This document shows, in pieces, positions 9,201-52,700 of a DNA stretch of 64,000 nucleotides. Source of the stretch: Podarcis melisellensis (taxonomy: Eukaryota). The notes under the pieces were generated by a model. The model saw only the letters and a program-made list of their open reading frames with translations, was not told the DNA's origin and did no database searches. The DNA lies in NCBI GenBank assembly GCA_964234715.1, contig OZ174276.1. One strand, 5' to 3'. The translations under genes were made by a program, and so were the position numbers. Position 1 is the first letter of the stretch. Each line of letters opens with the position of its first letter.

Positions 9201-9967
9201 TGTCACGGCCACCCAGGTCTGGTCCCAGCTCACAAGAGACCTCACTCCGTTGCAGCTTATTTACAGGAAAAGTTTATTGAAGATTTCTGCTTCTCATACA
9301 GTTCAGCATTGTGGCCGTACGTCTGCCACGTTAGACCGCTGAAGTCCCCTCTGACTCCTCCCCTCTTCCGCACCAACTTAATAGCCTGGCTCTAGACCAC
9401 CTCTTCCTCTCCTTTCTTTTCCGCAGGGTCTTCCTGCCCCCCTGGGTTCCCTCTCTCCGTGACTCGCCTGAGGCTGAATCCTCTGCCGCCTCTTCCCCCC
9501 TCTTTCTGGCTTTAGGGCCGGGCTCCTCCCCTGAGCTCTCTCCACTTCCGCGCGCCTCTACGTTTGAACTTGGCGCGCGTACGTTGCTGCTGACCTTTCT
9601 TTCGACCGCTACACCACCCCCTGCTCTGCTCTCCACCCTTTCCGGCTGAACACCCTGCTCCAACCCCCTCTCTCTGTTCTCTCCTAATCCTGCTCCCTCC
9701 GAGAGGCTGACGACTCCACCCCCTTTACTCCGTTCCGGCTGAGACGTCTCTTGCTTCCTCTGTCTTCCACTGGGCTCCTCTCCGCTTCTCCCTTCTCCTC
9801 CCCTTTGCTTGATTAAGGTAACCCCCTTTTGAGAATCCTCTGACTCGCTGCTCAGACTCGTGGATTCCCTCAGAATTCCGTCATCTTCTTCCTCATCCTT
9901 CTGCCCCTCCTCCCACTCGCTCTCCGTCTCCTCTGTCATCTCCTCCTCTCTCCCAGAAACCCTGACA
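9201..9967 (-). repeat. 3' LTR
   Basis: Preceded on the - strand by a polypurine tract; AATAAA at 9278-9273. Confidence 0.97.
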
Positions 9968-12900
9968 TCCATCCCCCCCTCGAAGCCCCCCCTTCCCCCC
10001 TCCCGCTCGCCGGGGACCGGTTGTGGAAACTGCGGCTCTTCGGGGGTAGGCTCAGGATACAGGTCGTGTACGTCAATGTTCTCTGCTGGCAGTTCTGTGT
10101 AAGTGTATTCGAAGTCGGGTTCTTCCCCCAAATGCTTCTCAGTCTCTGCTTCCATCGCTACTTCCTCCGGTGCTGCCCGCCAAGGACCTATCAGCCACCT
10201 CTTACGCCATTCCTCCTCTGGCTGCTCCTCCCACCAATAAGGGGTTTCCGTGTCCACCCCCGAGCACGATCCCCTGGGCGGGCTTGATTCTGGTGTTCTT
10301 TCCTCGGGGGAAGAGAAACCCCTGAACGTGCTATCTGACAATGTGGGTGTGAAAAGCCAGTCATCAAAGTACTCAGCTGGCATGGGCCTATGTGGGAAAA
10401 GTGCATGGAACTCTTCTTTCAAAAGGGGTTCGTCTAACTCGTAGCCTGGCACCCAACTATTAGCAGCGGCTGGTGTGCCCTCCCTGGCGAGAAAATATTC
10501 AACTCCCTCCTCCCCCCATCTCGAGTCCAGTATCTCTGTGACCTCGTTAAGAGGTTCTGGTCTTGGCGATTCCCCCCTCTCAGGCGCCCTCCTACGTGGC
10601 TCTGGGGGTGCTCCTGACTCTTGAAACCTGTGTGGGGTTTTGTAGGGAGTGAGCACCGACCTATGAAAGACCGGGTGCACCCTGGAACCTTCCGGAAGGG
10701 CTATACGAAAAGCCACCGGATTGATCTTAGCCTCAACTTGATATGGCCCTAGCTGCCTGTGTCCTAACTTCTTCTTGGCCAATGACCTGGCCGGCATCGC
10801 GTGGGCTGCTAACCACACCCAGTCCCCAACCTGGATGTCCTCTCCCGCCCTCCTGTGCTTATCGGCCTGCACCTTATACGCCTGTTTTGCCAGCTCCAAA
10901 TGTCTCCGCAGCTCCTCGTGCACCTCTTGCAACTCCGCTGCAAACTGGTCGGCATCTTGAGGCCCCCCCCCTCCTGGTGCCGCAAATCTCGGGAAGGTTC
11001 TGGGATGACGGCCATTGTTCGCGAAGAAAGGCGTCACCCCGGTGGAAGCGTGTTTCGTGTTGTTGTAGGCGAATTCAGCCATCGGCAGATAGTCCACCCA
11101 CGCCGCAGGTCGCTGGTTGGCGTAGCACCGCAGGTACTGCTGCATGATCGCGTTGACCCTCTCCGCTTGACCGTTGGTTTGTGGATGCCTCGCCGATGTC
11201 AGGTTGATTTTGACGTGCAAGATGCCCAGAAGCTTTCGCCAGAAAGTGGAAACAAACTGGCGCCCCCTGTCGGACAAGACGGACTGCGGAAGTCCATGCA
11301 CTCTGAAGACGTGATCGATGAAGAGCTTTGCGGTCTGTTCTGCCGTCGCCACCTTGGCACAAGGGATGAAGTGCGCCATCTTGGTGAACAAGTCCACCAC
11401 CACTAACACCGCCGTCTTACCTCTGGAGCTGGGCAGGTCTGTAACAAAGTCCAACGCTACCCTCTCCCATGGTTGCTGCGGTGTCTCCAGCGGTTCTAGC
11501 AATCCCGCCTGCTTCTGGTGCACTGGTTTGGACCTCTGGCAGATATCACACCTGGCGACGTAGTCCGCCACCTCTCCTCTCATCTGGGGCCACCAAAAGT
11601 CTCTAGCCACCAACTCCATCGTCTTTTCTTTGCCGAAATGGCCTGCACTAGGGGCGTCATGCAACTGTTGCAGAACCTTGGCTCGAAGCTCGTCGGTGGG
11701 CACGTAAAGGGCACCCTTACGAGTCAAAAGTCCATCTTGTAATTGAAACTCATCGTTGTGTCGCGACCCTCCGCGTAGCTCCTCCATCTTAGACTGTGCA
11801 AACTGATCCCTTTGCAACGCGCGTCGCACCGCGTCCAGGTCGACTGCGATGGTAGCGCACGTCCACGCCTGCGGTGCGAAAATGTGCTTTGCTGCGATTG
11901 GAGCTGCTTCCTCCAAGTATTGCGGCTTTCGGGACAGCGCGTCTGCAATAACATTGGAGTCTCCTGGGATGTATTCTATTTTGAAGTCGAAGTCCGCAAA
12001 GAACTCCGCCCAGCGCATGTGTCGCTGGGTCTGCAACTTAGCCGTCCGCCAATACTCTAAGTTCTTGTGATCCGTGCGGACCTGCACCGTGTGCTTGGCT
12101 CCTATTAAGAAGTGTCGCCACGCTTTGAAAGCTGCATGAATGGCCAACAACTCCCTGTCCCATATGGTATAATTGCGCTCCGTCTTGCTGAGCTTCCGGG
12201 AGTAGAACGCACCCGGTCGCCAGTTGCCTTGTGAATCCTCTTGCAAAAGAACGGCCCCAACCGCTCTATCCGACGCATCGGTCTCTACCCGCATGGGTCT
12301 GCCGGGATTCACGTGGAGCAGCTGCTCTTCGGAGGCGAAAAGACCCTTAAGCGTCCGGAAGGACCGCTCCGCTTGTTCGGTCCAGACGAACTTCTTCTTC
12401 TTGGAACTGAGGGTGTCAGTGATCGCCGCCGTCGCGTTCGCAAAACCTTTAATAAACTTGCGGTAAAAATTGGCAAAGCCGATGAACCTCTGGACCTCTT
12501 TCCGATTTCGAGGGCTTTTCCAGTCCAACAGCGCTTGAACCTTAGCCCTGTCCATGGCCAGTCCCTCGTCGGACAACTTGTAGCCAAGGAAATCAACCTC
12601 TCTGACATCAAACTGGCATTTTTCCAACTTGGCGTACAGCCTGTGGTCCTTCAGCCTCTGCAGGACCTCCCTCACGTCCTTATCGTGATCCTCCGACGAT
12701 TCCGAGAAAATCAGGATATCGTCGAGAAAGCAGACACACTTCTTGTAGAGGAGACCTGCTAGCACGTGGTGCATAAATGCTTGAAAAACGTGGCTGCCAT
12801 TTTGGAGGCCGAAAGGCATGACTCTGTATTCGTATGTGCCCAGAGGGGTGAACATGGCGGTCTTCCACTCATCTCCTTTCCGGATGCGGATGAGATTGTA

Positions 12901-13851
12901 AGCTCCACGTAGGTCCAGCTTGGTGAAAATCTTGCCCCTCCTGACGGTCGCTAAAAGGTCGTCAATCTTGGGCATGGGGAAAGCTTTGGGCTTAGTCAAG
13001 CTGTTGATGAACCTGTAATCCACTATAAGCCTTTTTTGGGGCGTGTCCTTCTTCTTCACAAAGAAAACAGGGCTGCCTCCCGCTGCTTTAGATTCCCGGA
13101 TGAAACCTCGCTTGAGGTTATGGTCTATGAACTCCCGAAGCTCTTGCATTTCGTCTTCCGACATGGAGTACAGCTTGGCAGCAGGCAATTGCGCCCCTGG
13201 CACTAAATCAATCGCGCAGTCGTAAGGTCTATGAGGCGGCAACTTGTCAGCTTCCTTCTCACAGAAAACCTCCAAGAATTCCTGGTACTTGTGAGGCACT
13301 GTTTGCACCATACCCAGATGTAATGGCTGCTCAGCTTCTCCTCCCTGATCGGTCTGAAAGCAATGCTGAGCACAATACGATGAACAAAAGTTGATCTGCC
13401 TCTGGTACCACGCAACCGCGGGACTGTGCCTCTCCAGCCAACTCATGCCTAACACGATGGGTGTGTCCGATAAGTGGGTGACATTGAAACTAATAAGCTC
13501 TCGATGGTTGCCAATCTGCATCATCATGGGAGGGGTTTGCTGCACCACTTGCCCCCCCAGCAACTTCCTGCCGTCCACCGTGACCACGTTCAGAGGCGTC
13601 GTTGCAGGCAGGAGCGCCATGTTGTGCTGCTTAACGAACTGCAGTCCCATGAAGTCGGCGTTGCTTCCCGAATCGATCGTTATTGGAACCTCGAGGAGTC
13701 TCCCATCAGGCAACTGGAGTGTTGCTGTGAGCAGAACTGCCGGTTTGGGAGGCAAAGGGTCCACGCTCTGCAGTGATGCTGGGGGCTTGTCTACAGATCC
13801 GCCTGGCTGAGCCCCAGTAGCTCTGCTTCCAGCCAGGCACTGTCGTTTCCC
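9331..13851 (-). CDS. pol: Pol (protease, RT, RNase H, integrase, chromodomain, long C-terminal tail), entered by -1 frameshift
   Basis: IDSGS protease; KLDLRGAYN, MPFGL and FLDD in RT; VETDASD RNase H; HHCC, DDE and GPY/F in integrase; no stops until 9333-9331. Confidence 0.97.
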   Translation of the reverse strand, partial: GKRQCLAGSRATGAQPGGSVDKPPASLQSVDPLPPKPAVLLTATLQLPDGRLLEVPITIDSGSNADFMGLQFVKQHNMALLPATTPLNVVTVDGRKLLGGQVVQQTPPMMMQIGNHRELISFNVTHLSDTPIVLGMSWLERHSPAVAWYQRQINFCSSYCAQHCFQTDQGGEAEQPLHLGMVQTVPHKYQEFLEVFCEKEADKLPPHRPYDCAIDLVPGAQLPAAKLYSMSEDEMQELREFIDHNLKRGFIRESKAAGGSPVFFVKKKDTPQKRLIVDYRFINSLTKPKAFPMPKIDDLLATVRRGKIFTKLDLRGAYNLIRIRKGDEWKTAMFTPLGTYEYRVMPFGLQNGSHVFQAFMHHVLAGLLYKKCVCFLDDILIFSESSEDHDKDVREVLQRLKDHRLYAKLEKCQFDVREVDFLGYKLSDEGLAMDRAKVQALLDWKSPRNRKEVQRFIGFANFYRKFIKGFANATAAITDTLSSKKKKFVWTEQAERSFRTLKGLFASEEQLLHVNPGRPMRVETDASDRAVGAVLLQEDSQGNWRPGAFYSRKLSKTERNYTIWDRELLAIHAAFKAWRHFLIGAKHTVQVRTDHKNLEYWRTAKLQTQRHMRWAEFFADFDFKIEYIPGDSNVIADALSRKPQYLEEAAPIAAKHIFAPQAWTCATIAVDLDAVRRALQRDQFAQSKMEELRGGSRHNDEFQLQDGLLTRKGALYVPTDELRAKVLQQLHDAPSAGHFGKEKTMELVARDFWWPQMRGEVADYVARCDICQRSKPVHQKQAGLLEPLETPQQPWERVALDFVTDLPSSRGKTAVLVVVDLFTKMAHFIPCAKVATAEQTAKLFIDHVFRVHGLPQSVLSDRGRQFVSTFWRKLLGILHVKINLTSARHPQTNGQAERVNAIMQQYLRCYANQRPAAWVDYLPMAEFAYNNTKHASTGVTPFFANNGRHPRTFPRFAAPGGGGPQDADQFAAELQEVHEELRRHLELAKQAYKVQADKHRRAGEDIQVGDWVWLAAHAMPARSLAKKKLGHRQLGPYQVEAKINPVAFRIALPEGSRVHPVFHRSVLTPYKTPHRFQESGAPPEPRRRAPERGESPRPEPLNEVTEILDSRWGEEGVEYFLAREGTPAAANSWVPGYELDEPLLKEEFHALFPHRPMPAEYFDDWLFTPTLSDSTFRGFSSPEERTPESSPPRGSCSGVDTETPYWWEEQPEEEWRKRWLIGPWRAAPEEVAMEAETEKHLGEEPDFEYTYTELPAENIDVHDLYPEPTPEEPQFPQPVPGEREGGRGGFEGGMDVRVSGREEEMTEETESEWEEGQKDEEEDDGILRESTSLSSESEDSQKGVTLIKQRGGEGRSGEEPSGRQRKQETSQPERSKGGGVVSLSEGAGLGENRERGLEQGVQPERVESRAGGGVAVERKVSSNVRAPSSNVEARGSGESSGEEPGPKARKRGEEAAEDSASGESRREGTQGGRKTLRKRKERKRWSRARLLSWCGRGEESEGTSAV
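9968..10004 (-). promoter_or_regulatory. Polypurine tract
   Basis: The - strand reads ...GGGAGGGGGGAAGGGGGGGCTTCGAGGGGGGGATGGA directly before the 3' LTR. Confidence 0.9.
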
Positions 13852-14867
13852 TGAAGCTGCTCCCCTGGTTGCACCTCTGCTGTTACAGTTGCCAGCGCTG
13901 CAGTGTGCTTCTGGAGCCTCTGGGGGCACTCTTTCGCCATATGGTGCGCACTGTCACAGATGTAACACTTCCTGGTTCCTCTAGGAGGCTTCGCTTTGGC
14001 TGCACCAGGGACAGGGCTCTGGGATGGCTTCTGAGCCCTAGCACCACCAATCTCCATTGGCTCCTCTCTGTCCTTCCCCATTGGCGAGGGGTGCGCACGG
14101 CTGAAGTCCCTGTGCCCAAAAGGGAGAGTCCTTGCTTGCGCACGCGCTTGGGGCCCGTCCTCCTCATGCCACGGACGCCCCTCATGTCGAATTCCAAGAG
14201 CTAAAGCCCGTTGCACCACGTCTTCTAGGGTCTGGGGTCTGTCCCCCCTAGCGATCTCATCCTTGATGGGGGGGCTCAATCCCTCCCAAAAAAGATCTCT
14301 GACCAGTTTACTGTCCTTTGGCCAATCTAAGGCGGTGAGCAATGCAAAAAATTTAGAGTGGTATTGGCGCACAGTCGCTTTCCCCTGCCTCAGCCCGTGC
14401 ATTTGACGGCGCGCAATGTCCACATCCACAGAGGATTGAAAACAAGAATCCATCGCTTTGATGAACGCAGTTGAATCGCGACGGGCCGGTCCATCTTCGC
14501 GCCACAAATTGCGTAGCCAAGCCCTGGCCTCCCCATGCAGGTGCGAAACAATGAACCCCACTCTCTCCTCCTCATCTTTAAAATCGTGACGGAGTAAGTG
14601 CAGTGCATATACAACGTCCGCTCTGAAATTGGGATAGTCTTGCAAGTTGCCATTAAAATGCGGAACTAGGGCACCCCCCCTCCGTCCAAGCGCAATGCCC
14701 TCCGCTCTGGATCCTGGGGCCCCCGCCTTGTCCGCGCGCTCCCACCTTGCCTGCAAATCCTGGCACGTCTTCTCCAAGTCGTCATTCTTCGTCTGCGAAG
14801 CAATGACTGCCGATGTGAGAGCGGTAACCTGATTCCGCAATGCAACCAGCTGCTCCTCAGCGCTCAT
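13791..14867 (-). CDS. gag: Gag (358 aa: coiled coil, capsid, CCHC nucleocapsid)
   Basis: ATG at 14867 in GCAGCCATG context; LRQG..V.QY...F capsid motif, EPMEIG, zinc knuckle CYICDSAHHMAKEC. Confidence 0.95.
   Translation of the reverse strand: MSAEEQLVALRNQVTALTSAVIASQTKNDDLEKTCQDLQARWERADKAGAPGSRAEGIALGRRGGALVPHFNGNLQDYPNFRADVVYALHLLRHDFKDEEERVGFIVSHLHGEARAWLRNLWREDGPARRDSTAFIKAMDSCFQSSVDVDIARRQMHGLRQGKATVRQYHSKFFALLTALDWPKDSKLVRDLFWEGLSPPIKDEIARGDRPQTLEDVVQRALALGIRHEGRPWHEEDGPQARAQARTLPFGHRDFSRAHPSPMGKDREEPMEIGGARAQKPSQSPVPGAAKAKPPRGTRKCYICDSAHHMAKECPQRLQKHTAALATVTAEVQPGEQLQGNDSAWLEAELLGLSQADL
13801..13851 (-). promoter_or_regulatory. -1 ribosomal frameshift signal
   Basis: G GGA AAC at 13851-13845 in the gag/pol overlap, a 6-nt spacer, then the 9-bp stem GCCTGGCTG/CAGCCAGGC. 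Confidence 0.9.
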
Positions 14868-14914
14868 GGCTGCTCCCGTTCGTGAGCTTCGCAAAAAAAA
14901 ATTTTTGCTTTTTG

Positions 14915-14925
14915 AGAGGGGACTT
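14915..14925 (-). promoter_or_regulatory. Self-priming primer binding site
   Basis: AAGTCCCCTCT begins 2 nt after the 5' LTR and is the exact complement of LTR 15079-15069 (AGAGGGGACTT); no TGG tRNA-type PBS is present. Confidence 0.85.
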
Positions 14926-14927
14926 AC

Positions 14928-15694
14928 TGTCACGGCCACCCAGGTCTGGTCCCAGCTCACAAGAGACCTCACTCCGTTGCAGCTTATTTACAGGAAAAGT
15001 TTATTGAAGATTTCTGCTTCTCATACAGTTCAGCATTGTGGCCGTACGTCTGCCACGTTAGACCGCTGAAGTCCCCTCTGACTCCTCCCCTCTTCCGCAC
15101 CAACTTAATAGCCTGGCTCTAGACCACCTCTTCCTCTCCTTTCTTTTCCGCAGGGTCTTCCTGCCCCCCTGGGTTCCCTCTCTCCGTGACTCGCCTGAGG
15201 CTGAATCCTCTGCCGCCTCTTCCCCCCTCTTTCTGGCTTTAGGGCCGGGCTCCTCCCCTGAGCTCTCTCCACTTCCGCGCGCCTCTACGTTTGAACTTGG
15301 CGCGCGTACGTTGCTGCTGACCTTTCTTTCGACCGCTACACCACCCCCTGCTCTGCTCTCCACCCTTTCCGGCTGAACACCCTGCTCCAACCCCCTCTCT
15401 CTGTTCTCTCCTAATCCTGCTCCCTCCGAGAGGCTGACGACTCCACCCCCTTTACTCCGTTCCGGCTGAGACGTCTCTTGCTTCCTCTGTCTTCCACTGG
15501 GCTCCTCTCCGCTTCTCCCTTCTCCTCCCCTTTGCTTGATTAAGGTAACCCCCTTTTGAGAATCCTCTGACTCGCTGCTCAGACTCGTGGATTCCCTCAG
15601 AATTCCGTCATCTTCTTCCTCATCCTTCTGCCCCTCCTCCCACTCGCTCTCCGTCTCCTCTGTCATCTCCTCCTCTCTCCCAGAAACCCTGACA
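14928..15694 (-). repeat. 5' LTR
   Basis: No differences from 9201-9967 by eye. TATTAA at 15110-15105 and AATAAA at 15005-15000 on the - strand. Confidence 0.97.
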
Positions 15695-24200: not shown

Positions 24201-24803
24201 TGTTTTTCTTCTCCTCTCCGTCTCTGATTAGTCCAGTAGGCCTTAAACGCAGGAAAAAGGAGGTGCTTGTTTTGGCTGTGAGTCACGTATGCAGAGAGAC
24301 GCCTGCCTTAAACTAGCAGGGGTCTGACTTACTGCAGAACCACAAGTCTGATGGATAGTGTATATACAGTAATAGGAAGTCTCACAGTGTTATGCTTTGG
24401 GGTTATTCCTCTTCTTTGAGTAGGCTTGAAGAGCAAAACTATTGAGCATGTTAATGTATTAGGCTGAGTCTTTTCAGCTACTCCGATAAGTTCGCTCCTT
24501 TTTTTGAGGCATTAGTTTGCCTCGTTCATGTTTGCTTTCCTCGTCTGCTCAAGTTACAGAAGTTAATGTGCTTCGCTGAGGTGTCCTAAATGATGTCATT
24601 AAGATAAGGTTTGCATAATGTCAGGCGTGCTACATCGAGTCAAAATACATTCCTCTGCACCCCTGCAAGTTAAGGTATGCATAATCTTTAGTAAATTTGA
24701 CCTGTTAGACTGCTTCTTGCAAAAGAAAAAAGAATCTTCTGCATCAAACATCACAAAGCTTGAACTGCTAGACTAAACACAAGTTGGAACCAGTTGATTA
24801 TAC

Positions 24804-25379
24804 CAGTGGTTTCAACCAGCGTGCCATGGCACCCTGGGGTGCCTTGAATGATGGTCAGGGGTGCCAAGGGCAACATTGGCTTCTGTCCCTCTTTCCTCCC
24901 CTTCCCCCTTTTGATGTCCTCTTGCGTCTCTTTCCTGGCTACAAGGTCTGCAGGCGAATGGTGCCCCTGGGGCTGGCCAGTGGGTGCTGGTTGCCAGGAG
25001 CTGAGGCGCCTTGGAGTAAGCAAGCAAGTGGGCAAGGGAGCCCAGCCAGCCAGTCTGCCAGCCCTTGCTTTTGGGAATGGACAGACATGTACTCGGCCCC
25101 TGTGGACAGTGTGAGGAGGCACCTCTCTTTGGGGTAGGGGTGGGGGCAGTTCAGAGATCTGGGGTGGCTGCAGCGGCTGCCTGGAGCACTCCCAAGGAGA
25201 GGGGAGAGGAGAGGAGGCTGAAGGAATACTCCACAAGGGAGGGTGTTCGAAAAAGAGTGAGGGGCTGCCAGCTCTGCAGGCAAGGGGTGACATAACCGGG
25301 CTCCTGAGCCCCACAGGGGTCCCGCAGAAAGAATGTAGTTGGTCAAGGGAGCCGTGGACTCAAAAAGGTTGAAAACCTG
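24804..25379. mobile_element. Non-autonomous hAT (Charlie-like) element
   Basis: cagtggtttcaacc...ggttgaaaacctg; perfect TSD gattatac. Confidence 0.82.
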
Positions 25380-25969
25380 GATTATACTATCAGCAGCACC
25401 AGGTAGCAACACACTGGGCCACCCTTTTGGGGTTGCACGCACAGAATCTGTGTGTTTTAATACCACACCCCTGCACGAATGAAAGTTGTCCACAGAAAAA
25501 CAGCATGTCAAGGAGATGAGTTCAGCAGTGGCATTTTTCCCTGACATGCTCCGTTTCTGTGTGAAGAGCAGGATGCTTTTTTTTGGTGGTACAGTTCAGG
25601 AAGGCTTTACTGTGATTCCCCTGATTGTATAATCTGACTCTTACAGACGTGTCAGAAATAGAGAAGTGCTTACAGAGAAGCCAGCCAACAGAAAGGATGA
25701 ATTATCAGTGACTTTATTTTGGGTTGCTTCTGAAGCTTCTTTTAGCTCTTCTAGAGCCATGCCAGCTTCCTACAAGCCAACTTGGCTGTGCCTCTTTGGT
25801 CTAGCAGCTGTGATGGAAGTGAGCAAAGACAGATGGGGTTCTCACCAAACATGGAGCATCAGCAAAATATTTCATCAACATTCAATACTGAGCTTAGAGT
25901 ATAATATGAGCATTCCAGGAGCGGGGGAGGTAATCTACTTTAATTACTACATAGTAAACTCTTGGTATT

Positions 25970-31500: not shown

Positions 31501-34500
31501 TTTTCTAAGTCAATAGGCTTAAGGGGAGGGTTACATAATTGGTCCAGACACCTTGTACATACATATAAATGATGTTTCTGTACACTCTGGCTTCCATCAC
31601 GGTGTTCTGTTGCACCAGAAGCAATTTAGTCATGCTGGCCACATGACCCAGAAAGATGTCTGTGGACAGACGCCGGCTCCCTAAACCTGAAGCAAAATGA
31701 GTGCCGTACCTCATAGTCACCTTTGCCTGGACTTAACCATCCAGGGGTTCTTTACCTTTACCTTTTTTACATATAGGGTAAAAGGTAAAGGTAAAGGCAC
31801 CCCTGAACATTAGGTCCAGTTGTGGCCGACTCTGGGGTTGCAGCACTCATCTCACTTTATTGGCCGAGGGAGCCAGCGTACAGCTTCCGGGTCATGTGGC
31901 CAGCATGACTAAGCCACTTCTGGTGAACCAGAGCAGCACACGGAAGCATTGTAAATTTAGTTAATCTCTTGTTTGTCATGAATTAGCTCTCTCCCTCTCT
32001 GATCTCTTGTTAAAACGAAAAATGCAACATGACTGCTAAATCTTCTGAGGATTATTGGTGTCTCCTCTGGCAGGAATTTAAGATTGATACATCTCTGAAG
32101 AAAACACAAGTATCCCCGCAGAACATAGCAATGAAGTTGAGAGCTGGCGAGGAAGCTACCTTTGACGTGGATGTGTTTGAGCCCAGTGAATCTCCTGTGG
32201 ACCTCTACATTCTCATGGACTTTTCCTATTCCATGCGTGATGACTTGGACAACCTTAAAACAATGGGCCAACAACTGGGTGAGAATTAAAAACTTATAAG
32301 CTGTGGGAAACAGCGGTCTGCAACGTCATAGTGCACTTGGCAAAAGACAGGGCTGGCCCTACCTTTAGGCTGAATGAGGCAACCATCTCAGGCAGCAGAT
32401 CCTGAGGAGTGGGGCATCCTTTCCCCTTTGTTGGAGGACAAAGGTGTGGGCATACAAGCTCTTTTGAACCCCCAAACTAGCCTGCTGCCCTCATGTGCAA
32501 TGGAAGTGTATTATGTAATTGGACTACATTGTGGGAAAGTACCGTATGTTTCAAGCAGAGGACTAAGGCTGCAATTCTAACCCCACTTACCTGGGAGCAA
32601 CCTCCATCTAATTCAACAGGATTTATTTCTGAGCAGACATGGTTAGGATTGCAGCTTTAATCTAGGTGTGCCAGGACATCTTCACTTACTTGCTCCTTTC
32701 CCACTTTCTTCCTGCCAGCAAATTTTTTGACTCAGCTAACCAGTGATTATACTATTGGCTTTGGCAAGTTTGTGGATAAAGTTTCAGCCCCACAGACAGA
32801 TATGAGGCCTGAGAGGTAAGTGAAGGTGATGCACCCAGAGGATACATTTGTGAATTAACTATTTAGGATCCATAGGATCCTAAATATATTGTGAATAAAC
32901 TATTTAGGATCTTCTTCGTTGTTTTTAGTGGGTGGGTGTGAAAGCTTTAAAGTGAATAAGCCTTGTAGCTTAAGCTAGCCTGTTTCTAATACCTATGACT
33001 ATGCCCCTTCTCCAAACCGTGCTGTCTTACTTCATCATATCCATGCATGACTGAATCTTGTGTATGTCAGTTGACTGACTCCTGATTAATATCTGTTTTT
33101 AATATGTGTTAATTAATTTTTAAACTTCTTTTGCAAAACAGTTGTGCACCCCAAATATAAATGGGGGGATTACATTTATATCCCATCTTTCCTCCAAAAC
33201 GAAGGAAAACAGTCTTTCTGCATCTGATGAAATCAACTTATGCCTAAGAACATTTTGGTCACAACTCATTTGTTAATCTTTATTTTGTTTTTGGTTTTTT
33301 TTTTGCTGTTTCAGATCACAACACATGACTGTTCTTCTATAATTAATTTTATTAAACTGTATGGCAGATGACTGAGGTCTTTCCCTATAAGATACAGAGG
33401 AGGTGTTTCTGATATCAACTTGCTGGTCGTTGATTATAAAGCCTTTGCTGTTCTTTTTACATTCAGACTCCGTGAGCCTTGGACTGGTGCTGACCCACCC
33501 TTCTCCTTTAAGAATGTCATCCGCCTAACCCATGATATCAATAAATTCAGCCAAGAGTTAATGATGGAGCAAATATCAGGGAACTTGGATGCCCCAGAAG
33601 GTGGATTTGATGCCATATTACAAACAGCTGTTTGCAAGGTGAGCCAAGAGGTCGCTGAAGAAGGCATAGATAGATAAAGCAATTAACTGAGTGTAAGATG
33701 GATATCGGCCTTCTTAGCGCCTCATCAAACTGTGAGATCAATGAGAATATTTAGGCCAAAGCTTTGCTTTAATTATCAGCACATGGTAAAGCTTGTGTCT
33801 TGCTAGAACCTGGTTGAGTTTTAGAATGGACTAGCTGTTATCAAGCCATAGCTGGAGTTACAACATTACAATTTAAATAAACTCCAAAATTTGTAGTTCA
33901 GCTGGAGCTTTATTGGGACCCACAACAGTGTGGCGGGTTCTCTAGAACTTTTCATCAAGCAGGCAGTGAGAGATGAGTGAGGAAAAATGAAAAACCAAAA
34001 CTTATAAAAATTAGACTGATGAAGTAGCCATGAGGTCAGCTTGTAGACTCTTTTTCCAGGATAGAGAATGCAGACTGAATAAGTCCCTCCCAGGTGTAAC
34101 AGATATCAGGTTATACACCTGGGATTCTGGGTGTATTTTATGTTTAATTTTCTGGAAATGTTTTGAAGATATAATTTAAAAAATGGTTAATTATTGCTTA
34201 ACAATGATAATTATTAAATAATTGTTAATAATTGTTATTAAATAATAATTACAATTGAATTGTTACTTTAGTGTAAATGGTGTTTTAATTATGTACTATG
34301 GTTATTGTTTTTCAACAGCTATTGTGTTGTAACCCACTTTAGGTACAAACTTGTGAGAAATGTGTTGTATGCATAAGGATGGAGATAATGGTTTGATTAG
34401 CAGCTGAAAGACATATGAAGGTTAAAAATAAATAAATACCAAAAGTGCCTTAGAATGGAAGCAGAAAACATGGTGAATTCAGGGAGCTATACCTTGTCAA

Positions 34501-40500: not shown

Positions 40501-43500
40501 GTGGAGAGTGTGTTTGCAATGCAGGCTGGTAAATACCTCATCCTTATTTTTTATTAAGTGGGGTGTGTGTTTTCTGTTTCCTTCAGCAGAAAATATCAGT
40601 TGGTTGGTTGGTTGGTTGGTTGGTTGGTTGGTTGGTTGATTGATTGATTTGTACCCTGCCCTTCCTCCAATCTGGAACACAGTGCAGCTTTGAATAACAA
40701 GCATAAGGACAACTGTATAAAATAAAACACAAAAACATCAGATATCAATAAAATGCAGCAGTGTAGCAGCAATATATAAATAAGAAATCTGTGGGACCAG
40801 CAACCTAACCCAAACAATTCATCCTCCAAACTACTGGACAATAAACTACTGGTTTATTGTTGTTTTATAAATCTTGGTTAATGGTAACCATGGTTCAATG
40901 TTATGTTCCAAATCAACTACAAATAGGAGGCAGGAAATTTTTAGACTCAAATATATGTTGGACTCATGCTGTCTGCTTTTCTCTAAGCCACACGTTCACC
41001 TCTCAATAGTCACTTCATGGCAAAGAAAGGTTGAGCTGTGACCAATTATTATCATTTCTTTGCACCATGCCTTCTAAGCAAGATGTCAGACCTTTGAGGC
41101 CTTTCTCAGTCTTTGTCTTGACTTCCTTTCTCCTTGACAGGCGAGGGGCTACGTGTAACTGCTCTACCACCTCCTCTACTGACGATGCGGCCTGCATACG
41201 ACCAGGGGATACAGAGCCCTGCTCAGGGCAAGGTGAATGCCTCTGTGGGCAGTGCGAGTGCTATTCTGAGGGTCGGACCCAGCGTTTTGAGGGCCGCTTT
41301 TGTGAATTTGACAATTTGCAGTGTCCCCGCAGTTCCGGATTCCTCTGCAACGGTGAGTGAGGCCTTCTGGAGCAGTGACCAGGCTTCAGGTCTGCCCTCA
41401 GGTGGTTACAACTTTCTGCTGCAGGCTAAGGCTACACACCTGAATCCATTTACTTGAGAGTAAGCTCCCTTGAATCTGATAGGTCTTAGCAGGCACAATT
41501 AGCATTGCACCATAAACTGTCGTTCTCAGATGCTTGTGAAATCACACAACTAGATCATAGATTATAGAGGATTCACTATTGTGTTAATGACTGAATAGAA
41601 GAGCCTCCCCAAACCTATTGCCCCAGTTATAAATTTTATAGTGTTTGAGTTTTTCTGCAGGCTATCACACCTTCCTCATATTCTTTGCCTTTGAATCCCC
41701 CTAGGCTTGTGCAGCTAATGCCAAGAAAAGCCTTTAGTGGTTGGTCATAGATCTGTCATCTTCTCTTTGAAAGCCTCTAGAGGGCATCAGTTACACTCTC
41801 AAGTGAAGGGAAAACAAAAGGTGTTTTCGTGATCCATTTCCGTACAGATTAGCCAAGTGACAGAGTGGGCAAAATACTGTGTTTTAAACAGATTCCCTGC
41901 ATTCACTGTGTCAGGCTGCAGCCAGGGTCAGGTTGATGTTGACCTGAGCATTATTGGTTTCCTAAAAACTATGTCTGCATGCCAAGTACTCTGAAGTTAA
42001 GTCCCAAGTATGTGTGGTTAGGTCAGGAGGACTGTAGTGTGAATAGAAACATACTATGGATTATCTGGTTCACCTTTCCCTTTCCAGTACTTGGCCTTTC
42101 TTATTGCAGCAAACAAGACCATGTTGTTGTCTTTGTGCATCAACCTTTATAAAATGTTGGAGGCATACTTAATGAATCCATCAAGTAGAAAACACAGTAG
42201 CTTAACATTCCCCAATTCTTTGTCTTGATTATAGTCATTTAAAGCTTCTGAATGGCTTGCACTTCTACCACATTTGGATAAAGACACCATTAAATGCTTC
42301 ACGACACAGATTTTCTCTACGCCTGTTGTATATACATCTTCCATGGCCTTGTTGTATAGCTGTTTTCCAACAGTACTCACTTAATGACTGACCCAAAATT
42401 GTGATCCTTCGATAGATAAAAATGTTAGGACTTCCCTCCTTAATTTCACATTACTGTACTGTACAGACCTTTATTTGACGTCAACATTTGTTTCTACCTT
42501 ATAACGCTCCTGCAGCCACAGCGTGAAATGGTGTTGTATTTATTGCAATACATTTTATCGTTTTCATTTCATTCATAATTTTTAAAAGCACAAAATATCT
42601 AAGATACAAAAAACAACAACACAACAACAAACCCCCAAAAGCTCCCGACATAACTATGGGCATTGTGGCACTTTGCCAAAGATGTGAATCTTGAGCTATG
42701 GCATATAAGCCATGTAAGTGTAGGCTGAGTTCTATGAAACCCTATCCTTTCCTCTGTGCAGATCGGGGGCGCTGCTACATGGGTCAGTGTGCATGTGAAA
42801 GTGGTTGGGAAGGCCCTGGCTGTGAGTGTCCCACAAGCAATGAGACCTGCATCTCCAGCAGTGGGGTAAGTTATTCCCCCCTGCCCTTCTTAGAAAGATA
42901 AACAAGGGAGATAGGAAGCTGTATTCCTTCATGTACAACAGCCTGAAGATCAGAGAGAGTTCTGTTTAAATAGATGGCTGGTGACTTCAAAGTTGATGTA
43001 GCTGGCCTCATGCTTTGCATTGGGATGTTCCCAAATTCAAGTCCTCACTTCTCCAGGCTCTCAGGAAAGTTCTTTCTGAGACCCTGGGCAAGGTGTTGCC
43101 AGTCAGAGTACACAATAATGGACTTGAGCTGGTAGACTGATTAATGGATTTAAGGCATCTTCAGAGATGGGGTAGGTAAAGGTAAAGGGTAAAGGGACCC
43201 CTGACCATTAGGTCCAGTCATGGCCGACTCTGGGGTTGCGGCGCTCATCTTGCTTTATTGGCCGAGGGAGCCGGCATATAGCTACCGGGTCATGTGGCCA
43301 GCATGACTAAGCCGCTTCTGGCGAACCAGAGCAGAGCACGGAAACGCCGTTTACCTTCCCGCCGGAGCGGTACCTATTTATCTACTTGCACTTTGACGTG
43401 CTTTCAAATTGCTTAGTTGGCAGGAGCTGGGACCCAGCAACGGGAGCTCACCCTGTCGCGGGGATTCGAACTGCCAACCTTCTGATCGGCAAGTCCTAGG

Positions 43501-46500
43501 CTCTGTGGTTTAACCCACAGAGAGGGGGTAGGACACAGAAAACTCCCTTATGCTGAGTCAGACTGTCAGGGAACTGCCATCAGCTCAGAAGCGAGAGGTG
43601 GAAGGGCCGTTGGATTACAGGGAGCCTCCAAAGATTGTGAGAAGCAGCACTTCCTCCCTGGAGGAGGGAAGCCACGCCTCCAGTGGGGAAGGGATGCAGC
43701 GCTCGGAGGATGCAAGGGAGAGCCACAGCACCGAGAAGGAGCAAAGCGGGGGGGGGGGGGAGAGGCAGGTCCCCCTTTGCCCACGCCCTCTCTGCGCAGT
43801 AGGTTTACGCGCAGAGAGGGGAGGCGTAGGATGGGGGTCAAGATACTACTCTGCTGGGGAAAGTTTAAGGACTGCCCACTCCCAGATTCTGCTAGTGACT
43901 GAGCAAGACATGGAATTGAAACGGCCTGCACTGTGAATGTTTTTGCACTGATAATAAAGCCTTTGAAAAGACCAGTGGGGGTCTTGCCTGTTCACTCTTG
44001 AGCAACCACGCCGGCATACATAACACAGACCTAGGACTTTCTGAATGCAAAGCAGATGCTCTACCACTGAACTATGACGCTTCCTGGGATGAAGTGGTGT
44101 TTTGTTTTGTTTTTTGCTCAGCATTATGCTGTATAGAAGAGACAGCAGAAAAGTTTAGCCACAAGTGTCCAGACATGGGTGGGAGGTGAACATGCCTCAC
44201 AGTCTCACTTTCGATAACCCAGTTTACTCACAGAACAGCCACCTTCTGTGGCTTGGCTTGTTCGCCAAACTCCCAGGGAATTGTATCTACCCTGCAAAAC
44301 TGCATGAAATTGCACCATTCAGTTGCCTCTTTGCATCCACCCTCCATCTGCTGATTTGCCCACTAAGGCCATTTCCTACTCTACTTTTGTGCTCTGAGAA
44401 CTGTGGGAACTCGACTAATAAGGGAGAAGTAAGGCACTGGTATGAAGTCTGTTTTTAGCTTATTTTGTCAGTTTTTGCAGCAGTTGTTAAGGTGGAGATA
44501 GTGTTCAGAATATGCAACCTGTTTGTTTTACACACATGAGGAATACGAAGGCATTTTAGTCCAAACTCTGATCTGCTCTCTTGAGTAATCTAGGCCACCA
44601 TGTAACTATTATGAATTGTTTGCTTAAGTCCACCTTCTTCCCAAGATACAGACCCTATCACCCTTTGCACGCTTTTAAAAATCCTTACCAACTTTTAAGA
44701 GATGTAAGGAAAGAGCCCTCTGATTATCCAAAGGGTTCTTTCCCCCATGTTTAACTTTCCTCTTGGCTGTGGGGGAAGAAATATCCTCAACTGAATTTGG
44801 GTAAGACTTTGCCATTTCAGAATAGAAGATGATGTATCACCTGAAAATGAACTTTCAGTGCTTGCCCTTGTCTTTTGCAGATTCTTTGTAATGGGCGCGG
44901 GAGATGTGAATGCGGCAGATGCATCTGTAGTAACCCTACCCTCTACATTGAACCCACCTGTGAAACCAGTTATGCGCTGGTAAGCTCTTAGATGAAGCCA
45001 GTGACTTTAGGGGGTCAGCATGCTTAGAGTGTTATATAGCCGATGACTAGGAATTTGGGTCGATTCTTATGCTATATTTGAAAGATTATTCTTTGTGCTT
45101 TTAAAACCACATTTACTCTTCCTTATGCATATTTGACAAATAGAGATCACTGCAAATGTAGCCACACATGGTCACTCCCTTGCTCCCGCTTTCCCCTGTT
45201 AATATGAACTTCCCTGGCAGCCCTTACTTATGATATCTCCATTACAAGCCAAACCAAGCAAAAGATGAGCACACTCTATCTACAACAGCGAATTTCTCTC
45301 TTTTTTCTACTTTTTATCTATGATTTTCAATTTTATACATTTCAATAATCTTTCTGCGTTTTTAAAAAAATATTTTCCTCATATTCCGAATTAACAGAAC
45401 GTAATCATTTATTCATCTACTTTAAATGTATACAGTCATACCTTAGCTGACGAACACCTTAGCAGTCAAACGTTTTGCCTCCCGAACACTGCAATCCCGG
45501 AAGTGAGTGTTGCGGTTTGCGAACTTTATTTGGGAAGCCGAACGTCCAGTGGGGCTTCTGCGGCTTCCAATTGGCTGCAGGAAGCTCCTGCAGCCAATTG
45601 GAAGCCACACCTTGGAAGTTGAACAGATTTCCAGAACGGATTCCGTTTGGTTTCAAGGTACAACTGTACTCTTATAAAATTGCAGGTTATTACAACAATC
45701 CTACCAATGTTCTGATCTGTTTACAGTTTATTTGTAAATTTTCAATAAGCCATTTCCATTCTTTGATTTAAAAAGTTTGTTATCTTGATTTCTTATTTTT
45801 CTGGCAAGTTTTGCCATTTCTGAGTATTCCATTATTTTTTGCACCCATTCTTCTTTCGTCGGGACTGCAACAGGGAACATTTCTATTATTTATTTGCCGC
45901 AGTAACAGCTTCTTTCACAAGAGAGTTCTCTGCAACTCACAGCGCAGTGATTAACTTAGCCCTGTGTGTCTTATGTATTCCATGCAACAACTTGTTCCTT
46001 CTCTCCTTCCTGTTCTCCGATGAGATAAGTGTATGTATTGCTTTCAAGCACTCTTCCGAAAGTCAAATGTTCCACCTCTGCTGGTCTTTCACTCTGTCTC
46101 TTCAATACTTCTATAGACTGATGTCCTCTCTCTGGTGAACAGGGCTACCGACATGTGTGTGGAGAAGATGTCCGAACCTGTGTTCAGTGCCAGGCTTGGG
46201 GGACTGGAGAGAAGAAGGGAAAGAAATGTGAAAACTGCCGTTACAAGATCCGAGTAGTGGATGAACTGGAACAAGGTACCATGATTTCCTTGATGTTCAG
46301 CTGTAGGCCAAAGAGTATGAGTGGTCAACTTGTGGCTATCCATATGTTCCTGGACTATAACTCCCATCCTCCCTAGCCATAAGGTTTGTGGCTGGGGTTG
46401 ATGAGAGCTGGAGTCCAGCAACAACTGGAGGGCCACAGATTCTCTATCACTGGCATGGATAGCAGTCCTCCTCTTACAGTGCATTGGTGGAAACAAAATT

Positions 46501-49709: not shown

Positions 49710-52700
49710 GCAGTGTGTGTGTTTAAAAAAGTATCTCAGTACACCAAATGTTTAGTTTCTGGCATATATAATATGCGTAAAGGTAAAGATAAAGGGACCC
49801 CTGACCATTAGGTCCAGTCGCGGACGACTCTGGGGTTGCGGCGCTCATCTTGCTTTATTGGCTGAGGGAGCCAGCATACAGCTTCTGGGTCATGTGGCCA
49901 GCATGACTAAGCTGCTTCTGGCGAACCAGAGCAGCGCACGGAAACGCCATTTACCTTCCTGCTGGAGCGGTACCTATTTATCTACTTGCACTCTGACGTG
50001 CTTTTGAACTGCTAGGTTGGCAGGAGCAGGGACCGAGCAACGGGAGCTCACCCCATTGCGGAGATTTGAACTGCCAACCTTCTGATTGGCAAGCCCTAGG
50101 CTCGGTGGTTTAACCCACAGCGCCACCCGCGTCCTATAATATGGGTACATGCTAAAAATGTAAGATGTGAATCAAACAAAAGGCATGGAAACAAGGACCA
50201 TTGTTGTGTGAGCATAGAGACCCACAGGTCAAAAGAGAGCAGGTGTTTGGCAGCAGTACACAATAATACAGCCTGCTGCCAGCAACCTGAATTCCATTTA
50301 CCCAACTAGAAGCGGCTCTCATCTAGAAAAAAATCCTGTGGAAACCTTGCTTAGGTAGGTAACGTTTCTGCATTTGAAGTGAGGTCCTCTTATTCCACTT
50401 ACTCTTGTCCTTGGGAAAGATGTAAAGCTTGAACAGGGCCGTTGGCGTTTCTATGTTCTAACTCCTCTTCTTTCTCCAAAGGCCGCACTGTTGGTTTCAA
50501 GGAGGACCACTACCTGCTCAGAAAAAGCCTCATGACCTCGGACCACCTAGACACTCCCATGGTTCGCAGCGGCAACCTGAAAGGCAGAGACACAGTTCAC
50601 TGGAAGATCAACAACAATGTGCATAAGGAAGGCTTCTCTTCCTTAGCTCTCAATCCCAAGGACCTGAGTAAGTGCCAGTTTTGCAAGGTGGAGAAGGGGC
50701 TAACTGGAGCCAAAGATGGTGGGGGGAAAGTGGTCCCTCGGTCCTCTCAGAATCTGATCCTAAGCTGATTCTAACATGCACATTCCTCTCACATGAATGC
50801 ATGTGGGAAATTACTTCTTAGAACACTTCCCCATGTTGTAATCTCTCTCCAGTTAAGTAAGTTGTCTGTGTAGCTTGAAACCTTATCCCTGAGGGCTTGA
50901 AACCTCTTCCCTGCTAGCTTTCCACTTGAAATGGGATTTGACACTGGAGCTTCTTCAAACAAGGGGCATTCCCTCACCCCTGGCTTTCTTTCTGAGATGA
51001 TACAGCCAGACAAGAGAACAGTATCATCATGAGCAACTGTGCTGATAATTTATCTGTTAAGAGATCCCTAGGTCTCTCACGCAACTACAGTTGACTGATG
51101 GGAAGGAAACAGGATCACTATTAAATCAGATTATGTGTGTTTGACAGACATGTCCTAAATCAGATTCTAGCCTTTGATTTCAAAATTCAGCTAACCATAA
51201 TAAAATGGCTCTACTGCTTCTGCCCAACCACCCACATTGCTACATCTCATGTCTCCATATGCATGCTATTTGCTGGTAGTGTTTCTTGCTGATTGATTTG
51301 TTTCCTTGAATCCAGTTCCATATGGAGTGTCTCTGAGACTCGCCCGGCTCTTCACCCAAAACCTTGCAAAACCAGATAGCCGTGAGCATGAGCAACTGCA
51401 AAAGGATGTGGAGGAGAATGTAAGGAGCAGGAATAATGCTGCCTACTGGGTTTGCGACTGAGGAATGGGTGGGCAGGGGGGAATACAATCAAGCCGATGC
51501 AAGCTTCCTTTTCTTGGATTTGAGTTAAGAGACAGCATATGGTTGTTGTCTGCTCAACATAAGGAAATCAAGTGGGATTAACTAAACCCCTTAATCTGAA
51601 CATTGGGATGAACACCAGGAAATCTGAGTTAGTGAAACTCTCTCTTGCTCTTCACAGCTCAATGAGGTTTACAGGATTATCCCTGGTGCCCACAAATTTC
51701 AGCAGACAAAATTCAGGTGAGTTACTTTGGGAGGGGGCAACTGGCATGTAGAGAAGCAGTGAGATCTCTTCCAGTGGGTGCTCCTTTTAAAGATGAGAAT
51801 GGGTAAAAAATGGCTGAACGTCTGGTGTGATTAAGTCTAGGGGGCATCCTTGGAAGAATATAGAGAATATAAAGTAGTAGGATTAGAACTCTTGTCCCAA
51901 CAGCTTTCCCCAGGTCAGAGTGTGTATGAAGCTTGAAAGGCCAAACCAAAAAATCTATGTATTTCTCCTTGGATTGTAATTAAAATTATGCATATTGTCT
52001 GTTTACTCTCCAGGCTGCAGCCAAATGCTGGGAAAAGGTAAGGAATTCATTTCTTGCTTTCCATCTAGGTGTAGACGTGTGGATACTTTCCATTGCTGTG
52101 CTTATTCTGTGGGAGTTTTCACTCACTACTCAGAAACTGCGATGTCTTCTTACAACTGTATCATTAGCATCGTTGCTCTCTGCACTGCAGAGATCATCAT
52201 CTTCTTCGCCAGTTAACTTCTCACTGTTTGTGGGATGGAAAGTAGATCGATGTTAGCCCTTCCTAAGCAGAACTAAGAGGTGCATTCAAACTGCCCCTGC
52301 TGCGTGAGCAGAAATGGTCATTCTATCACCCCTTCCCATGCCCTCAGAGTTTTTGATTTGATGTCATGTTTGTATCTCAACAACAATGCTGAACTCAAAG
52401 CAGCTCACAATTTGTCTACCATGTTTCTCTGTGACGAACGCTGTAGCAGAGGAAGTGGATTCACTTATGCCAGGGAACTGTGACTGGCCAATAGTTTTTG
52501 CAGACCTGTGTTACCCCTTTAGTGTGGCAGCAGTGTTTATTCTATGGATATGCTGCAAGCACTCCCTATTTGAGTGGTGTGAAGTAGCCTTCATCTGGCC
52601 CCATTGCTGTGGAAAGAGTCTTCACACTGGCACCTGTTCCAGATCAGTGGCTGAAAATCATTGTGCATAAAAGTATGTGAGCAGTGACTTTATATTGCTA

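Follow-up and report, generated by a model that had tools for sequence, protein, structure and literature searches.

Background

Long terminal repeats (LTRs) are usually annotated as purely regulatory DNA. Protein-coding sequence that shares nucleotides with the U3 of the 3' LTR is found in human immunodeficiency virus (HIV nef) and mouse mammary tumour virus (MMTV sag), in the form of separate accessory open reading frames (ORFs) that are expressed from spliced or LTR-initiated mRNAs and do not continue pol. Among plant elements, the CRM clade and some families of Bingo are already established examples of a polyprotein that itself reaches into the 3' LTR (PMC3059260, PMC3605345). Here we analyse a solo LTR of 462 nt located in a 64,000-nt stretch of Podarcis melisellensis DNA (contig OZ174276.1, assembly GCA_964234715.1; this whole stretch is called the window), which also contains an intact Ty3/Gypsy chromovirus with a pol frame that enters its 3' LTR. 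No report of a polyprotein reaching into the LTR in vertebrate chromoviruses was found in the literature searched.

In group A of the plant CRM elements the polyprotein ORF does not end at the polypurine tract but continues into the 3' LTR, where a putative targeting motif at the C-terminus of integrase is encoded (Neumann et al. 2011, PMC3059260). The lizard elements are alike in this layout. What the LTR adds is different, however. In CRM the LTR part is the diverged chromodomain-like CR motif itself, whereas the lizard elements have a normal chromodomain upstream of the polypurine tract and their LTR adds a low-complexity tail of 100-210 residues that ends in a basic-LLxW motif. Because this normal chromodomain sits upstream of the LTR, the lizard elements are not members of the CRM arrangement, although they would work in a similar way.

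In the Bingo (Tekay-clade) chromoviruses of Beta vulgaris, the gag-pol ORF of several families reaches into the flanking 3' LTR (PMC3605345), and here the chromodomain is found upstream of the polypurine tract, as in the lizard elements. Bingo elements are plant elements, though, and in the text consulted no motif is named for the section encoded by the LTR (PMC3605345). For the function of such a tail a working model is provided by Ty1 integrase, which has a long disordered tail and a short basic C-terminal segment acting as nuclear localization signal (NLS) and as tether to a host complex (PMC8487063, PMC7459421, PMC10050235). The analogy with the basic-LLxW motif concerns the mechanism alone: Ty1, from yeast, belongs to the Pseudoviridae, and what its segment binds are Pol III subunits.

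The solo LTR and its integrase relative

We consider it highly probable that the element at 43564-44025 is the solo LTR of a Ty3/Gypsy chromovirus family whose pol frame crosses the polypurine tract and the U3 of the 3' LTR, ending about 50 nt before AATAAA. A HMMER scan of 1.84 billion representative proteins, using the peptide from reading frame 1 of the solo LTR as query, yields a match to the database protein P0006 (E 1.5e-8, 65% identity). Residues 64-112 of the query are aligned to residues 426-474, which form the very C-terminus of P0006. Four other matches cover neither the C-terminal block of the solo peptide nor the end of their own protein, and look like low-complexity noise; the three that were scanned against Pfam show scattered, unrelated families.

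P0006 represents the C-terminal portion of an integrase of the chromovirus type; it has an SH3_Tf2-1 domain (residues 134-195, 6.7e-20) and a chromodomain (Chromo PF00385, residues 221-269, 3.4e-11). It continues with an acidic stretch, ...GGEGGPGEEVD, VRELPSE, about 100 residues and finally LGVKQLLCWKRFKRRPLSDSASD at the end. The frame-2 start of the solo LTR (VRELPSE) and its frame-1 end (LGVKQLLCWKRFKRRPLSDSASD) are joined in P0006 in a single ORF, which can be read directly from the protein. Using tblastn, residues 373-413 are placed on frame +2 of the solo (LTR nt 2-172, E 1e-4) and residues 427-474 on frame +1 (nt 193-336, 32/48 identical, E 3e-20). At the protein level, the GGEGGPGEE codons probably represent the polypurine tract of P0006.

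The family of the solo LTR, linked to its internal region via P0006 only, would be a chromovirus with a C-terminal chromodomain integrase. P0006 is 45% identical to the intact element of the window over 274 aa of the integrase C-terminal, SH3 and chromodomain stretch, and on account of this value it belongs to a different family of the same clade. The initial annotation of this DNA had proposed a coding-LTR model, and with P0006 that model gains from independent data a second, different chromovirus family in which pol reads into the LTR.

The anatomy of the solo LTR is clear. Its termini, TGTCAGG...ACATAACA, show the TG...CA ends with a short inverted repeat, and the first 7 nt are those of the LTR of the intact element. 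To determine family depth, contigs from three lizard DNA runs (three species) were aligned to the solo LTR at a likeness of at least 80%, giving 937-1,555 related contig pieces per run. In all three runs the depth climbs at 43564 and collapses at 44025, exactly the LTR ends. Given these piece counts and a depth that is bounded at the LTR ends, 43564-44025 is a genuine solo LTR of a high-copy family, just as initially annotated; its TG..CA ends, the CAGAC duplication and about 1,000 related pieces per run agree with this. Its flanks have no match to gag or pol, and a second copy is absent from the window. When the window was searched for other LTRs that start with TGTYARR and are bounded by a target-site duplication, this one alone came up, and hence no third family was available.

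The solo LTR is surrounded by sequence resembling a short interspersed nuclear element (SINE) on both sides. A SINE family derived from transfer RNA has three copies in the window that are 88-91% alike (43175-43484, 49775-50084 and 31777-31945), the first of which ends at 43484, about 80 nt upstream of the solo LTR. One contig of another lizard species (organism A, run X1) joins 43557 to 44029, skipping 471 nt. The joint represents either an empty orthologous site or a paralogous uninterrupted SINE, and is weak evidence because its shorter side comprises only 24 letters.

Conservation among diverged copies

In the three runs family depth has two maxima, one over the initial 40 nt of the LTR and the other at 43840-43893, and it drops about ten-fold past the stop codon (after 43911). 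Positions 43903 and 43905, the first bases past the TGA, are where the loose ends of diverged subfamilies set in. Similarity between subfamilies ends at the stop codon.

Translated in frame 1 and ungapped, the diverged loose ends read VSVKELLCWR, RRLGIKKLLCW and LLCWGRTRKR, and RNA reads of one lizard species (organism B) read GVKQLLCWKR, which is identical to P0006. In the diverged copies the LLCW codons are CTT TTA TGT TGG, CTA TTA TGT TGG and CTG CTA TGC TGG. Including the solo there are four codon versions, with synonymous differences only and a pattern of CTN YTN TGY TGG. Between the solo and the RRLGIKKLLCW version, 5/8 differences are synonymous and 3 are non-synonymous, the RRxGVK part being mostly synonymous. 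These numbers are a hand count on 30-nt loose ends, using the best-supported ones only. In this small sample the motif is under protein-level (purifying) selection within the superfamily of the solo LTR, and the C-terminal block is conserved at the level of amino acids.

A DNA function could leave a similar trace. The ORF would then be real, but its C-terminal block would be kept as a core promoter, with a TATA-like box and an initiator at the U3/R border, and the peptide would be a passenger. The position fits: the block occupies the interval about 95-45 nt ahead of AATAAA, and in this part of an LTR the promoter is to be expected (PMC3601003). The Leu-Leu codons are moreover the only AT-rich spot of the U3, about 95 nt before AATAAA, and are TATA-like both in the intact element (TATTAAG) and in transcribed or diverged subfamilies (TTTTATG, TATTATG); the end of conservation near 43903 could equally mark the transcription start. 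Against this, LLCW varies at four of its 12 nt, and these sites track codon degeneracy exactly. A TATA box accounts for neither the basic run nor the Trp codon. LLCW is even kept without the TATA-like string in two versions, the solo and the CTG CTA TGC subfamily. As LLCW is retained after this string is lost, a protein constraint is favoured, and a promoter carrying a mere passenger peptide seems to us possible but rather unlikely. A dual constraint by promoter and protein is possible, and is compatible with a pol frame that extends into the U3.

RNA run X23 contains 70 reads related to the solo LTR, mostly less than 90% alike. They come from related subfamilies and as a consequence say nothing on the expression of the window copy. 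The reads match only a 40-nt block (43863-43903), have P0006-type codons upstream of it and unrelated sequence right past the stop. Most first mates are on the + strand.

Reading frames and the frame break

Two frames of the solo LTR are open over a long distance: frame 1 has 112 codons counted from the first base, and frame 2 has 123 codons and closes 32 nt beyond the frame-1 stop. Frame 3 is the only one with stops, and has seven. In dinucleotide shuffles the best frame reaches at least 123 codons with P=0.034, and the second-best at least 112 codons with P=0.0002-0.0004. A simple phase bias as the cause of two open frames was rejected, T being even across the three phases. If each half has a true coding frame, the remaining coincidence of two open frames (43564-43936) amounts to approximately 0.2 x 0.065 (~1%), which is mild.

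According to the initial annotation the solo opens in the phase of the intact element and has to be shifted in frame at a run of 13 G (G13) to obtain the complete tail. The phase is correct: frame 2 starts with VRELPS... and pol enters the intact LTR as xxT GTC AGG. Also the G13 run, the quoted frame-1 peptide and the stop are exact to the base (Table 1). The shift itself is partly borne out. One frame in P0006 is split over two phases in the solo, which places the break between 43735 and 43756, and this 22-nt interval derived from tblastn of P0006 overlaps the G-run. A frameshift is no requirement for having any ORF, however, because frame 1 is open throughout 112 codons; the shift is needed only for reproducing the real ORF of the family.

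At the G13 run the family depth is at its lowest and no indel was called in the three lizard runs. Contigs are thin there, and the run length could be a homopolymer error of the assembly. In any case the window copy is dead: it is a solo LTR, many of its sites are unlike the family majority and its coding parts are out of phase.

The intact chromovirus and the shared motif

The intact chromovirus of the window is a very recent insertion (Table 1). Its gag contains a Ty3 capsid and a zinc knuckle, and its pol comprises protease, reverse transcriptase, RNase H, integrase and a Tf2-type SH3 domain. Here a single ORF can be followed directly from the integrase through the polypurine tract and on into the LTR. 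The pol frame crosses the border of the 3' LTR as xxT GTC AGG, encoding VR, and its 211 LTR codons end at a stop that precedes AATAAA by 52 nt. An open frame of this length has P=0.005 in dinucleotide shuffles, whereas the other two frames contain the expected stops.

Close relatives are present among the Podarcis muralis proteins in UniRef. For one of these, P0002, identity to the intact element amounts to 78% in pol, compared with 48% in the tail that the LTR encodes. Its tail is open for 209 codons and ends in RRKRWSKARILSWCTRGGDSDGASPV, against ...RKRWSRARLLSWCGRGEESEGTSAV in the window, with the same C-terminal motif and the same final residue. As P0002 keeps both the 209-codon frame and the end, the coding LTR is conserved in this lineage. 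In the annotated P. muralis relatives P0001, P0004 and P0005 the conserved tail frame is abandoned, either near the polypurine tract or within the LTR. P0004 still continues for tens of codons in a different frame, so alternative frames easily stay open in purine-rich LTRs.

At the DNA level the two LTRs of the window have little in common, as had been noted initially. Using blastn at a word size of 7 no match is found between them, and a MAFFT alignment reveals nothing shared beyond the termini and AATAAA. At the protein level both lineages, the only two available for the comparison, end alike: a basic cluster, [RKI]-L-L-[SC]-W, 13 or 14 residues and a stop. The scores for this likeness vary with the method. 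BLASTP between the tails of the two lineages gives E 0.8-2.6, and a profile (hidden Markov model, HMM) of the intact-lineage tails against the C-terminal piece of the solo gives P ~0.11; neither is significant. Smith-Waterman scores of the last 45 residues against shuffles have P 0.016 and 0.035 for the intact element and P 0.24 and 0.37 for P0002. In a gap-free comparison anchored at the C-terminal ends (offset ±2), P is 0.003, 0.003, 0.033 and 0.06. The pair of P0002 and P0006 is the sole one without sequence seen at the initial annotation, and its anchored P is 0.033. The initial claim that the basic-LLxW motif is conserved across families is therefore weakened to a suggestive one: the anchored values (P 0.003-0.06) speak for it, the BLASTP and HMM values do not, and homology of the motif between the two families would be plausible but unproven.

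The initial annotation also used the spacings as an argument. These are accurate: the stop precedes AATAAA by 50 nt in the solo and 52 nt in the intact element, and AATAAA is followed by 67 and 72 nt, respectively, up to the LTR end. As support for coding they do not hold. A conserved AATAAA signal and terminal repeats belong to the generic LTR layout (PMC3601003), hence the distance from AATAAA to the end is no argument for coding. As to the similar position of the stops, it may reflect no more than the place at which the T-poor U3 ends; the wrong frame of the solo also closes, 32 nt later.

In a second alternative the tail is translated but has no function. Its frame would be open only because the U3 is purine-rich and T-poor, and its likeness to the intact tail would be a coincidence of two basic, low-complexity peptides. 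The cross-lineage BLASTP and profile scores leave room for this; in the first half of the LTR any given frame has a probability of about 0.2 to lack a stop, and relatives that have shifted frame, P0004 for instance, continue to be open in a different one. A functionless tail should acquire early stops, however, and in P0002 the 209 codons, the motif and the final residue are all kept at a tail identity of 48% vs 78% in pol. P0006 and the solo are 67% identical over the last 48 residues, the changes in LLCW are synonymous only, and the anchored test points the same way. Since the same stop and end-motif are kept while the tail as a whole has diverged to 48% identity, we regard a functionless tail as improbable.

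That there is no coding at all, the open frames being an artefact of composition and P0006 an artefact of gene calling on a mis-assembled contig, would agree with P0006 being a single member on one short contig and with a word-index search that found no match for the solo peptide, but is hardly credible given the E-value of P0006 at its very C-terminus behind a bona fide chromodomain, the uninterrupted layout of the intact element with its identical LTRs, and the lizard RNA reads with the P0006-type codons GVKQLLCWKR.

Proposed working and points against it

The solo LTR would have been left by recombination between two LTRs of a chromovirus. In the genomic RNA of such an element U3 would be present only at the 3' end. 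Ribosomes translating pol would decode the polypurine tract as Gly and Glu and go on into the U3. They would terminate at the U3/R border or just ahead of it, so that only a short 3' untranslated region follows. The LTR-encoded part would be about 100 residues long, with the VRELPS start, a fast-evolving acidic Ser-/Gly-rich stretch that is probably disordered, the basic cluster, LLCW and approximately 14 more residues. The predicted product is an integrase with a chromodomain, followed by a disordered, acidic Ser-rich spacer and a basic/hydrophobic end-motif. By analogy with the CRM CR motif and with the C-terminal NLS/targeting segment of Ty1 integrase, the basic/LLxW end may be a short linear motif for nuclear import and/or tethering.

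More tentatively, lacertid chromoviruses of at least two families could share an LTR-encoded end-module of integrase, consisting of a disordered spacer, a basic cluster and LLxW located 13-14 residues before the stop. It would act as import/tethering motif with Leu-Leu codons doubling as TATA-like box, and would be the vertebrate counterpart of the plant CRM CR motif. We consider this reading as a whole possible but rather unlikely.

Several observations weigh against a pol frame that extends into the solo's U3. The tail is known from one database protein, P0006, which is derived from a single 1,528-nt Logan contig; a word-index protein search with the solo frame-1 peptide gives no match, and one with the P0006 tail returns nothing but P0006. 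No full-length member of the solo's family was seen. Loose ends upstream of the LTR start have no common sequence (agreement 0.38-0.40), from which it follows that most copies are solo or 5' LTRs. The U3 of the solo is T-poor (15.6% T) and has both frames open, so long ORFs come easily. Variant sites by codon position count 5/8/6 in the first part and 5/2/4 in the last part, without an excess at third positions; this is taken to reflect random decay of some 1,000 dead copies and is then uninformative. That the tail is made as part of integrase is a prediction from sequence. An AlphaFold2 model of P0006, based on a 7-row alignment, has a mean predicted local distance difference test (pLDDT) score of 40.6, and about 30 for the tail (residues 273-474). 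Such values are consistent with a disordered tail but are otherwise uninformative and give no structural lead.

Implications

With a second lizard family, the U3 of chromoviruses is seen to carry, next to its regulatory role, what is probably the end of integrase. Solo LTRs of families with a coding U3 can mimic short genes. Also, cutting pol at the polypurine tract leads to wrong boundary and ORF calls for coding-LTR retroelements. In these families LTR evolution would be under both protein and promoter constraint. If the basic-LLxW motif is indeed a targeting or import signal, it offers a handle on the choice of integration sites by vertebrate chromoviruses. How sites are chosen has been elucidated in yeast Ty1/Ty3, and for plant CRM there is a proposal; nothing comparable for vertebrates was found in the literature searched.

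Features of the window

In Table 1 we list the coordinates of the solo LTR and of the intact chromovirus.

Table 1. Positions of the solo LTR, the intact chromovirus and their parts in the 64,000-nt window.
Feature	Position	Strand	Remarks
Left target-site duplication CAGAC	43559..43563	+	Read directly; 5 bp, as long as the CTATG of the intact element
Solo LTR, 462 nt, TGTCAGG...ACA	43564..44025	+	No adjoining internal retroelement sequence; from ends, duplication and family depth
First part of putative LTR-encoded integrase tail, remnant, LTR frame 2 (VRELPS...GEGMQR...)	43565..43735	+	tblastn with P0006 residues 373-413
G13 homopolymer	43748..43760	+	Overlapped by the frame break of the solo copy, 43735-43756
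Last 48 tail codons, remnant, LTR frame 1	43756..43899	+	67% identical to P0006 C-terminus
Basic run RREGRRR	43810..43830	+	RREHRRR at the equivalent place in P0006
LLCW codons CTA CTC TGC TGG	43846..43857	+	Synonymous-only changes in diverged copies
TGA stop of tail ORF	43900..43902	+	End of similarity between subfamilies
AATAAA polyadenylation signal	43953..43958	+	50 nt past stop; 67 nt before LTR end
Right target-site duplication CAGAC	44026..44030	+	Read directly
Intact Ty3/Gypsy chromovirus	9201-15694	-	Two 767-nt LTRs, 100% identical; duplication CTATG; gag and pol uninterrupted
5' LTR of intact element	14928-15694	-	767 nt
3' LTR of intact element	9201-9967	-	767 nt
pol of intact element	13929-9334	-	1,532 aa; stop 9331-9333
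LTR-encoded pol end of intact element, 211 codons	9334..9966	-	Open frame entering the 3' LTR

A further segment of 928 nt (24619-25546) is bounded by TGTCAGG...CCTGACA, the same 7-nt ends as in the LTRs. A matching target-site duplication was not seen for this segment, and its composition is quite different, being pyrimidine-rich on the strand of its ORF. This ORF, of 202 codons and starting with ATG, is on the minus strand; its start precedes the TGTCAGG end of the minus strand (25546) by a single base, and from there it enters the segment.

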